Assembly: GCA_024704765.1 (NCBI GenBank)
Contig: JAKMXF010000033.1
Span: 62,001-126,000, forward strand
Reading direction: 5' to 3'
DNA length: 64,000 nt
Source of the DNA: Oopsacas minuta
Lineage: Eukaryota; Animalia; Porifera
The notes beneath the pieces were generated by a model. The model was not told the origin of the DNA, did not search any database, and saw only the letters and a program-made list of their open reading frames with translations. Of the stretch, positions 4,501 to 61,234 are shown piece by piece (position 1 is the stretch's first letter; the number at the start of each line of letters is the position of its first letter). Made by a program: the position numbers and the translations under genes.

Positions 4501-7500
4501 AACAACACAGATTGTCTGACGTCAGAGCCTGACAACAGATCCTCTTTTGTTGCTCTAGTTCTATCCTCCAGCTGTTCACACCTCTCTTGAGCCTGTTTAT
4601 TCATAACAAGACTACTAGCTAGTTCTTCCTTCAGATTACTAAGCTCTATAGCTTGTCTTTGGTATCTATCCTCTGATGTAGCCAGACGTTTAGTGACGTC
4701 ATCACGTTCTTGCTGTATTTCCTCGTATTGATCTGTGATAAATATCAAATAATATTATGGCGCTTACAATGGCATAAAGTGTCCTAGTGTCATATATATT
4801 ATTATTATTATTATTATTATTATTATTATTATTATTATTATTATACACATTAAAATTAACAGAACTAATAAGATTATAATTCAGTTTGCATAGGATCGAT
4901 TCTCCTTTCTCTTCTCCTCTCTTCTAACTCAAAATGACACATCTCAAAATGAACTCTATCCTCACTCTCTGAATAATCACTAGTAAAGCTATCTTCCTTC
5001 TGATTAGGACCAGATCCTTGACTACTACTCTCTAGATTGGAATGTATATCAATACCAGCGTATGGACTTTTGTCCTCGTCTTCTGTACCAGTGAAGTCCA
5101 TTCCAAACACATCATCCAAGGAGTAGCTACGTTCTATTCCCCTATTCAATACTTCACATTGTGAGTGGTAGGAACGATTCTCCAGCTCTTTCTCATGCCA
5201 GGAGACATACCTTTCCGTATATGCCTTCCTTGGATGGATATCATCCTCTGGGGCACTATTCTCCCCTGTGAATAACCTGCTCTCTGACCTGTCGATATCG
5301 AATCCGAATTCAGCGTTAAATAGAATCTCTTCATTCTCAGTTTTCATACGAAGTAATTCCTCTTTAATACTCTCAATCCTTGAGAAGTTCTTCTGAGCTA
5401 TCCTTGAGTTAACCCTCTGTCTTATGTATCTGTCCTTCTCTAGCACCACCCATTCAGTCTCCAAGTCAGGGACAGGACGCTCTATCTCTATGCTAGATTT
5501 TCTTAACCGTAGTTTCTGGAATAACTTATCCATTCGTTAATACAAGAGTTATGGCCTACTGTTTATATATGAAATACAATACCATTCTATTATTTCTATT
5601 TATGCTAGTTTCTGTGATAGCGTACTGCAAGAATCGTCTCACGAGTACTTACAATATTCATTATTACAGATGACCATTATCCAAAATGTGGACACGCCTA
5701 TGTAAGAATTAGAGGCTAGTATATTATTAGCAAATCTGTCATTGAAATGATAGTCGCATTATTTATATTTGTATGTTTGCCATTTGATTCAGACGTAATA
5801 AACAGAGTATCGACGAATCACAGTTATTTATCGATAAATTCCAAGAGACCATTATCGTCACTTGGATATTAGTTATTTACAATAACATACGGGATAGTTG
5901 CTGTTCATCTTTTTTCAGAGCTGAGTTAACTTGTTGTGCTTGTAGCAGATCTGAGTTTATCGTTCTATTAAGTCTCTTTACTTCAATCTATCAACATTAA
6001 TTCATAAACTGAGATGTAGCCAAATACCCACGAGGTAACCATCGAAACTGGGACATAACACGTCACAGAAGCACGTTAGAGGAGTTGGTGAATGATTCAT
6101 GGTATATAGTATGTGATTATATGTTATGGCCCCCTTCCAAAAGTGCTAAAACATGAATAATCACCCCAGCCACTATTCTAGCTAAAATACAAAAATACAA
6201 ATAACTAACCATCTCAGAACTAGCCCTTGAGTATAGAGACTGTAACTCCGATTCTGAAGCTGTCAATTTCTCTAATTCCTATTTACAAATATGAATAATT
6301 AGTTCACATTCCAATCCCCAAATTAATATTAGATACATCTCTAACCTGTTTTAGTAGCTCTTTATCTTTATTAATTTTGTCAAGAGCTAATCTCCCAGCT
6401 TCTAATTCACTTGACATTATTTCATTCTAAATATACACATATTAACACCTATGTATGTACATATATAGGCTAGTTACATACTGTATTGAGGGTACTCTCA
6501 TTGTGTTCCTCCTTCAGCTAAAAGGTGTGAAAATATGAATATAAATAATATAAAGTAGTAAACATGTGTTACCTGTTGGTTTAGTTTTGTGATCTCATCA
6601 AGTTTCTTTTTGAGCTAGAGGACAAAATAAGTAAACACAAGGGGGCCAATTTGAGACTGAAAATCGTCCCATTGTACCCTAAAGGTGTGAAAATATGAAA
6701 CTAACCACATTAGCATCAACCTCTGCTATCTGTAATTTGGTATCTAGTTTACTCTTACAATTCTCTATTTCTACTCTCATTTCTCTCTCAGAGTTATAGT
6801 CTTTCTGTAATTTCTTTAATTTTACATCCAAGTTACTAAGAATGTGTATAATTATTGTTTGTTTGTTTGTTTGTTTGTTATTGTTTACTACCTACATTAT
6901 TTTCAACTCAAATTCTGCCTTTGCTACAGAATCTTCTCTCTAAAAGAAAATCTCATAGAATATCCATGGTTCATTAACACAATAACACATGTACCTTAGG
7001 TAACAAATGAGCAGCAGAAGAGGGTCTGGAGGTAGGAACACCAGAAAGTAGGCCCTTCTCTCTAGTGTATGTAAATCCCACAAATGGGAGATTGTTACCC
7101 GCAAAATTCTAAGATAAAAGGTTTGAAAATAATGACATATCCATGGTTTGAATTAACATACAGGTGTTTGAGGGAAGACTTCAGGTTCCTGAACAGAATT
7201 CTCATCTAACTCCTCAAAATAACTTGTGTCATCATCACCTCCTAAGTCTGGTATCATAGGTGCTTGATCTAGAGACGATAATATGCAATAAATATGCTGA
7301 CAAAAATAACACATGTAAATATATATACTCACGGTCTCTGATAGATTCCCAGGTCCATTTGGCGTTCTTAAAGAATGAATGAGACACTATATGAGAGGCT
7401 CCTAATCTCCCTAACCGATGTGAACTAAACAAACAAACAAACAAACAATCACCCTACCCTGTTAGAAAATACTATCTTAACTCACGTATCAGTAAGGAAC

Positions 7501-61234: not shown

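Follow-up and report, generated by a model that had tools for sequence, protein, structure and literature searches.

Genes nested in the long introns of a 64-kb stretch of the Oopsacas minuta genome: probably ordinary glass-sponge gene nesting with mostly old guests

In a compact genome with short introns, why do the few long introns contain whole genes, and are introns the places where new genes land? We addressed this question in a window of 64,000 nt of the glass sponge Oopsacas minuta (contig JAKMXF010000033.1, here C33, positions 62001-126000), which represents about 0.1% of the genome. What we find there is most probably ordinary glass-sponge gene nesting at high local density, with guests that are mostly old residents of their introns. 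Nested genes are common in glass sponges, with conserved microsynteny between species, and in Aphrocallistes vastus 2432 nested genes, many of them conserved, make up 12.4% of genes (PMC10282587). The O. minuta assembly comprises 61.46 Mb in 365 scaffolds (Table 1, PMC10282587), and its introns have been reported to average 194 bp for a single scaffold (PMC10282587) and 341 bp for the whole genome (PMC10280926). Only 83 nested genes were annotated in O. minuta genome-wide, and the low counts in this and some other annotations probably reflect a disabled gene-modelling option (PMC10282587).

After correction, our tally for the window is six introns of 1.16-4.45 kb, in five hosts, that hold eight guests; one of these introns, in COX5B, had been overlooked and houses an intronless NHL gene. 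The hosts and their long introns, in window positions, are:

1571-9229, minus strand: ROCK-like kinase gene (host 1), about 27 exons, with outer limits from an unvalidated exon-chaining model
4733-5890, minus strand: ROCK intron, 1158 bp, phase 1, GTATGT..CACAG
14631-17581, minus strand: gene for a PH and IRS-type PTB adaptor, DOK/IRS-like (host 2), named from domain matches
15593-16901, minus strand: adaptor intron, 1309 bp, phase 0, with a weak donor, GTACCA
19532-28649, minus strand: calcium-channel alpha2delta-like gene (host 3), with domains in the order VWA_N, VWA, Cache
22933-27384, minus strand: alpha2delta intron, 4452 bp, phase 1, GTTTGT..TATAG, with three genes inside
34362-37248, minus strand: COX5B gene (host 4), exons 37137-37248, 36832-36908, 36641-36740 and 34362-34477, 405 nt in total
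34478-36640, minus strand: COX5B intron, 2163 bp, phase 1, GTAAGT..TTTAAG
52853-62013, plus strand: PDZD8-like gene (host 5), a name kept from the original prediction
54744-56427, plus strand: PDZD8 intron a, 1684 bp, phase 1, GTTTGT..ATTAG, recovered exactly by script even without masking
56428-56580, plus strand: PDZD8 exon between the two guest-bearing introns, 51 codons, in an open frame at 56403-56582 that is phase-compatible on both sides
56581-59309, plus strand: PDZD8 intron b, 2729 bp, phase 1, GTTAGT..TTTAG, recovered exactly by script, 93% guest coding

Domain matches on either side of the introns bear out the proposal that the hosts are conserved multi-exon genes. Host exons were searched singly against profiles rather than as joined-exon models, and Pfam matches on single exons were often under threshold. 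In the five introns of this set that had been predicted before, GT..AG lies exactly at the predicted ends on the host strand, and the flanking open reading frames (ORFs) are phase-compatible. We also used a home-made exon-chaining script, which is unvalidated, skips some small exons, serves for a rough census only and threads same-strand guests into host models unless the guests are masked; with the guests masked, it recovered four of the predicted introns exactly. Assembly breaks at the intron boundaries, a possible source of error that had been raised, were checked, and N is absent from the whole window, so that no assembly gap lies at an intron end.

In the ROCK-like gene, Pkinase matches were identified in exons 8060-8359 and 7645-7896. 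The kinase exons and a FVGFTY hydrophobic motif, read from the sequence, lie upstream of the intron, and coiled-coil exons and a C1-like HHF..C..C exon (2111-2461, weak C1_1 match) lie downstream. The intron itself is flanked by phase-compatible coiled-coil ORFs at 5880-5987 and 4479-4754, and was among those recovered exactly by the script once the guest was masked. In the adaptor gene, exon 15389-15592 matches IRS PTB profile positions 35-88, the first 38 or so PTB residues are legible in 16902-17054, and a weak PH match occurs upstream of the intron in 17127-17435. Here the script chose an alternative donor at 17009 (1417-bp intron), but domain logic favours the donor listed above; searches of the flanking exons against solved structures gave nothing useful. 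The alpha2delta-like gene has VWA_N in 27798-28163 (E = 1.7e-8), a weak VWA_2 match in the exon directly upstream of the intron (profile 6-51, E = 0.08) and dCache in 21939-22304 (E = 0.0019, under the Pfam cut-off), which is the VWA_N-VWA-Cache order of such a channel subunit. A MIDAS-like DCSSS upstream and LFLTDGEE downstream place the intron inside the VWA domain. The script found both outer ends of this intron and split its interior at a spurious 3-nt exon, and the flanking exons matched no solved structure.

In COX5B, exon 36641-36740 (..ANPNLVNSMFEERIIGCI) matches residues 29-61 of solved chains such as 5z62_F (E 5e-4 to 2e-3), and for the last exon, 34362-34477 (EEEQTFVRWWTLKTGEPVRCECG..), there is a weak match to residues 63-91 (E 0.69). 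The four zinc-binding cysteines (C-I-C, C-E-C) are all present in this match, which identifies the gene as COX5B, and they are divided between the two exons, the second zinc cysteine coming from the junction codon. The upstream exons were taken from the script, which unaided stops before the last exon. In the PDZD8-like gene, PDZ_6 was identified in 54527-54796 (E = 7.6e-7) and C1_1 in 60343-60639 (E = 0.011, under the cut-off); a transmembrane (TM) segment, an SMP-like region and a coiled coil were read by eye only, with TM, SMP-like region and PDZ before the introns and C1 and coiled coil after them. From domains that are split by the introns or ordered around them, we infer that each long intron is spliced out of a single host transcript that contains both of its flanking exons.

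The guests are:

4874-5533, minus strand: g219, intronless, 219 aa, acidic, clade-restricted, on the host strand in the ROCK intron
16135-16755, plus strand: g206, intronless, 206 aa, Lys/Glu-rich, clade-restricted, antisense in the adaptor intron
23147-24307, plus strand: NHL386, intronless NHL-repeat propeller gene, antisense in the alpha2delta intron, Pfam NHL E = 3.8e-25
24580-26139, minus strand: NHL519, intronless NHL-repeat gene, on the host strand in the alpha2delta intron, Pfam NHL E = 2.6e-20
26684-26983 and 27040-27295, plus strand: two-exon guest of about 185 aa in the alpha2delta intron, with a 56-bp intron, GTAAGA..TTTTAG, phase 2
34924-36132, plus strand: NHL402, intronless, antisense in the COX5B intron, Pfam NHL, exact public protein
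54845-56242, minus strand: MFS465, intronless sugar-transporter-like gene, antisense in PDZD8 intron a, Sugar_tr E = 1.1e-37
56665-59190, minus strand: g841, intronless, 841 aa, clade-restricted, antisense in PDZD8 intron b, exact public protein

All eight guests have their coding sequence wholly within one host intron, as nested genes do. Seven are intronless and one has two exons; six are antisense to the host and two lie on the host strand. Gaps between guest and host splice site are 84-542 bp, and guest coding makes up 47-93% of the intron. Eight of roughly 30 genes in the window are thus nested, which is denser than the published average, and the gene density of the window (about 1 gene per 2 kb) is also above the published genome average.

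In the five predicted introns, guest ORFs of 206-841 aa (220-850 aa stop to stop) are longer than in 500 of 500 dinucleotide shuffles, g219 and g206 each having no shuffle as long. The ORF threshold of 100 aa is weak by comparison, being reached by chance in 11-42% of shuffled introns, and codon-usage scoring barely separates coding from non-coding DNA in this genome. Four guests exist as stand-alone public proteins, namely NHL519, NHL402, g841 and NHL386, the last as a 362-aa form that starts at 23219. No exact public protein was found for g219, g206 and MFS465 under the start codons tried, and these three may be missing from the public annotation or merged in it. In 5 of 7 guests TATAAA occurs in the 150 nt that precede the ATG, vs 12% of background windows; in MFS465 it stands at -95 and -70. 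It lies 34-37 nt before the ATG in three guests: 34 nt in g219 (5534-5570), 37 nt in g206 (16095-16134) and 36 nt in g841 (59191-59230). This position would imply very short 5' leaders, with promoters inside the 119-542 bp spacers between guest and splice site. All guests also have a start codon and a stop codon of their own. On these features they would be separate transcription units.

The proposal that the guests are orphans or members of expanded families agrees with what we found, in that they are clade-restricted proteins or belong to very large intronless families (NHL, MFS). The three orphans, g219, g206 and g841, have no Pfam domain and are single copy in the genome. They are also the genes covered by our search for homologues in other assemblies, which found homologues over the full length in 6-7 other assemblies, with 47-57% identity: 7 for g219 (47-56% identity, 60 invariant columns), 6 for g206 (47-51%, with invariant blocks such as DFGRIKY) and 6 for g841 (54-55%, 818-868 aa). 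These homologues share long invariant blocks, and elsewhere each is called as a separate protein of equal length. With a profile of the g219 family, only 4 matches were obtained among 1.84 billion representative proteins, and a language-model (Atlas) search with g219 gave nothing. The three orphans are thus restricted to a clade and not to the species. g841 is predicted to be a type I membrane protein with a signal peptide, an all-beta ectodomain, a TM helix near 686-728 and a disordered tail (AF2, low confidence). Its family, seen in only seven assemblies, has an ectodomain of about 650 aa with many invariant Cys, Trp and Gly and a Ser/Pro-rich tail. An Atlas lead to fibronectin type III is a candidate, the AF2 model (pLDDT 44) being too poor for a fold search. 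The two-exon guest, both exons of which are single copy in the genome when searched one by one, has no Pfam match and is probably a gene.

How closely does intron length follow occupancy? It had been claimed that all six introns over 800 bp contain at least one ORF of over 100 aa, eight in total, seven of them intronless and on both strands. Five of those introns hold up in their splice ends, phase and host domains, and seven of the guests are real; the case in cyclin B3 fell away, and NHL402 restores the count of eight. The features of that case are:

33021-33800, minus strand: second intron of cyclin B3, 780 bp, phase 1, GTAAGT..TTTTAG, with no credible gene inside
33650-33764, no strand assigned: copy of a short dispersed repeat, about 115 bp, with at least 10 other genome copies at 75-86% identity

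This intron had been placed at 32983-33826. The cyclin B3 gene reads MLKRK..RQTLGDITN from 34193 and has Cyclin_N and Cyclin_C matches in its downstream exons. The ORF at 32984-33310, counted before as 108 aa, needs a TTG start and has 89 aa from its first ATG; it has the same strand as the host and extends past the acceptor into exon 3, and its length was reached in 8-19 of 500 dinucleotide shuffles. We rejected it as a nested gene. The repeat family in this intron is about 110-150 bp long with internal CCGGTTAATCGGG motifs, and the copy here has no Rfam or tRNA match.

In a census with the script (88 introns in 11 multi-exon genes), the median intron was 105 bp and 60 introns were at most 150 bp. 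Five introns were 401-800 bp, none with an ORF over 97 aa, and the only introns above 800 bp were guest-bearing. For a sample from elsewhere in the genome, we searched exon by exon with the myosin-head profile and kept every gap of 800 bp or more that is bridged by the profile. Five of the eight long introns found in this way were occupied:

9.8 kb: two NHL genes and a 364-aa ORF
2.35 kb: intronless zinc transporter
1.79 kb: NHL gene
2.31 kb: same-strand MCM-like gene
1.79 kb: broken NHL gene

The guests in this sample include conserved housekeeping-type genes. The other three introns (800, 1073 and 1339 bp, in one gene) were empty, with short dispersed repeats only, and Rfam and tRNA scans of the window and of these empty introns gave nothing. 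Over the window and the myosin sample, 9 of 9 introns of at least 1.68 kb were occupied, and among those of 0.8-1.6 kb two were occupied and at least three empty. The claim that every large intron is occupied is therefore right for all six window introns above 1 kb and wrong for the three myosin introns of 0.8-1.3 kb: that a long intron is an occupied intron is a strong tendency, not a law.

Two further observations were made on the myosin genes. Three paralogous myosin genes (L052, C88:744001-752500; L053, C88:112501-117600; and C135:5920-7560) carry an antisense NHL gene in the same head-domain intron, at profile positions 82-87, with the NHL frame broken into 242 + 190 aa in one copy; a joint duplication of host and guest seems to lie behind this. 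The myosin gene L050 (C299:615001-624000) has three or four gene-free introns of 0.8-1.5 kb with three short dispersed repeat families, one of which, of about 80 bp, has hundreds of first-look candidates at 92-97% identity.

When did the guests arrive? We identified 837 first-look candidates for the NHL family in the genome and dozens of loci for the MFS family, both mostly in tandem arrays; among the matches listed, the closest paralogues and most others are uninterrupted open frames, some with stops. The best paralogue of NHL519 is 39% identical and that of MFS465, whose family members are intronless, 52% identical, and the neighbouring guests NHL386 and NHL519 share 33% identity. Homologues of all three orphans recur on contigs of identical size (338,120 and 426,374), and contigs of 570,989/299,536 and 697,264 recur for two or three of the orphan families, which indicates that linkage has been kept. 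With the closest paralogue at most 52% identical or absent, and with orphan homologues in other assemblies, seven of the eight guests are to all appearances old residents. No poly(A) tract was found downstream of any guest, a mark that would have decayed in the old ones, and the long (AAT)n microsatellite at 4767-4830 in the ROCK intron, which starts about 30 nt past the g219 stop codon, is not a poly(A) tail. A search of the genome for an intron-bearing parent gene found none for any guest. The guests accordingly lack the marks of retrogenes (poly(A) with a target-site duplication; an intron-bearing parent).

NHL402 is the exception in age, with paralogues at 88% and 85% amino-acid identity. 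It lies within a duplicated unit:

34597-36163, plus strand: duplicated DNA unit with NHL402, 1567 bp, with 327 bp ahead of the ATG and 31 bp after the stop

The closest match of this unit, at 95.5% nucleotide identity, is C33:155924-157126, at a distance of 59 kb on the same contig; three more copies, which end at the same points, are 92-93% identical to it. The other copies have longer common flanks that include a TRAF/MATH gene. In a tree, the window copy is sister to the nearby one (L045) with 88% bootstrap. Neither poly(A) nor a target-site duplication was found at the ends of the unit, and its identity over coding and flanking DNA, discrete ends and close source are those of a DNA-mediated segmental duplicate. 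That the unit carries 327 bp of the upstream DNA of its paralogues suggests a DNA copy and not an RNA copy, contrary to a retrogene. In the simplest reading, NHL402 would have arisen recently, when a sub-segment was copied at the DNA level into a COX5B intron with a previous length of about 600 bp. Gene conversion of an old resident NHL gene was considered as the source of the young unit and rejected, since family members at about 38% protein identity lack the DNA homology from which conversion could begin.

The young NHL subfamily has copies on at least five loci at 92-95% nucleotide identity, some with stop codons (L045, L046 and L048 among the loci), and at the other loci the NHL gene stands head-to-head with a TRAF/MATH gene. 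Pairwise dN/dS among intact young copies is 1.9-2.7 (dS 0.025-0.046), which suggests diversifying selection.

The account that we consider most probable for the window, ordinary glass-sponge nesting with mostly old guests, draws on the intron ends and their phase, on host domains that flank the introns, on how old and how conserved the guests are and on the one young DNA copy. Empty introns would be held at about 50-250 bp in this compact genome by deletion bias, and introns would be long mainly when they hold sequence retained by selection, such as a gene, some of them being long through a recent arrival, for example a short dispersed repeat. If empty introns are kept short and long ones retained for their content, introns need not attract new genes. 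The guests would have entered at different times, by a route that in the seven old ones is no longer legible, and NHL402 would have come in recently, when a 1.57-kb unit of promoter plus gene was copied at the DNA level from a locus 59 kb off. Deletion bias as the reason for short empty introns is something that we infer, and the tight packing of the guests fits it. Several points weigh against this account. Host splicing across the guests and guest transcription are both deduced from sequence, the comparison with other assemblies demonstrates linkage and not nesting itself, and the intron census depends on an unvalidated script that skips small exons. The myosin gene with three or four empty introns of 0.8-1.5 kb runs against deletion bias, which predicts few such introns; the empty introns of this gene do contain dispersed repeats. 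The two-exon guest has no homologue support, the outside-genome search having covered only the three orphans.

An unlikely alternative, suggested by the original prediction, is that new single-exon genes, whether retroposed or inserted at the DNA level, land mainly in introns. The insertion of NHL402 into COX5B, recent, DNA-level and with sharp ends, speaks for it, as do the intronless state of seven of the eight guests, the recurrence of NHL genes as guests of other introns and the published suggestion that retrotransposition is a source of non-syntenic single-exon genes (PMC10282587). However, seven of the eight guests are old, and the searches for poly(A) tails, target duplications and intron-bearing parents gave nothing. 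The upstream DNA that the young copy shares with its paralogues points to DNA and not RNA. In O. minuta 9872 of 16,340 annotated transcripts, about 60%, are single-exon (PMC10282587), and the guests, of which seven in eight are intronless, are thus near the base rate. In A. vastus there are 12,409 single-exon transcripts and 2432 nested genes (PMC10282587), so that at most about one fifth of single-exon genes can be nested and most lie outside introns. The only other recent duplicate in the window, a fucosyltransferase pair, is located between genes, and the NHL and MFS families are mostly in tandem arrays. The landing-site idea is thus mostly unsupported; of its two mechanisms, DNA-level insertion applies in one case, and no marks of retroposition were found. 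The fucosyltransferases themselves (39711-42839) lie head to head at 98% protein identity between a DHHC palmitoyltransferase gene and a coiled-coil gene, outside any intron.

Much less probable is that the guests are not genes in their own right, their ORFs being due to chance, to pseudogenes in decay or to alternative exons of the host. The ORF in cyclin B3 is just such a case, two guests lie on the host strand where the script can thread them into the host model, and the two-exon guest has neither a domain match nor homologue support (the outside search concerned the three orphans). Yet six of the eight guests are antisense to their hosts, guest lengths are well outside the range of chance, the guests are distinguished by clear Pfam domains or by conservation elsewhere over the full length, invariant blocks included, TATA-like elements are enriched upstream of their start codons, and four stand alone in the public protein set. 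Least probable, by a small step, is that the hosts were wrongly joined, the flanking exons being separate genes and the guests intergenic: host splicing rests on sequence, the PDZ-bearing frame would stop, unspliced, 18 codons past the proposed donor, and the script unaided ends COX5B before its last exon, but all six introns have canonical splice sites at phase-compatible positions, the alpha2delta VWA and adaptor PTB domains and the COX5B four-cysteine zinc site (residues 61/63 of the solved chain consecutive) are split across introns, and domain order is fixed, with ROCK kinase before C1 and PDZD8 SMP-PDZ before C1-coiled coil.

Beyond ordinary nesting in the window, a tentative generalization, which we hold to be somewhat more apt to fail than to stand, is that glass-sponge intron length is near binary. 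Empty introns would be tens to a few hundred bases, and essentially all introns above about 1.7 kb would house genes; nesting would still be forming through DNA copies of the fast-evolving NHL family (dN/dS >1), and the O. minuta annotation (83) would understate nesting more than 10-fold. If so, nested pairs could be observed while they form, and COX5B/NHL402 would offer a dated, DNA-mediated origin of such a pair. The eight nested genes in 64 kb, vs 83 in the whole published O. minuta annotation (PMC10282587), mean that gene finders run on this genome need nested prediction enabled. The window also provides clean cases for the coexistence of host and guest transcription, with a guest filling up to 93% of an intron and lying 84-119 bp from host splice sites.

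Between the alpha2delta-like gene and cyclin B3, we identified folate-receptor-like and V-ATPase subunit D genes (28586-29293 and 29491-30527), the former small and cysteine-rich with a signal peptide and a hydrophobic tail.

Compared with known systems, nesting in the window is not a new kind of system, the general phenomenon being published already. Retrogenes too are intronless and turn up at new places, often in introns; unlike retrogenes, the guests have no poly(A), target-site duplication or intron-bearing parent that we could find, and the young copy carries upstream DNA. Neutral accumulation of nested genes by insertion into introns was reportedly proposed by Assis et al. Nested genes of fly, worm and human are likewise wholly intronic and many are single-exon (Yu et al. 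2005; Assis et al. 2008; Kumar 2009, via PMC3192792), and the antisense share is 6 of 8 in the window vs about 63% in human (via PMC3192792). In those animals long introns are common and mostly empty, whereas introns in the window are tens of bases unless occupied, and occupancy nearly predicts length. The NHL402 unit resembles dispersed segmental duplicates of immune-type NHL/TRAF clusters, being 92-95% identical at four other loci, some with stops, with a TRAF/MATH neighbour and a dN/dS of 1.9-2.7; it differs in that a sub-segment landed in the intron of a housekeeping gene. The closest likeness is to the glass-sponge nested genes of A. vastus and O. minuta (Francis et al. 2023, PMC10282587), where complete, mostly single-exon genes lie in introns of a small, dense genome. 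The host-guest pairs of the window were not found described in the available part of that account (PMC10282587). Relative to the same part, what is new here is the occupancy of every one of the nine introns of 1.68 kb or more in the window and the myosin sample, with empty introns staying short, together with one dated DNA-level insertion.

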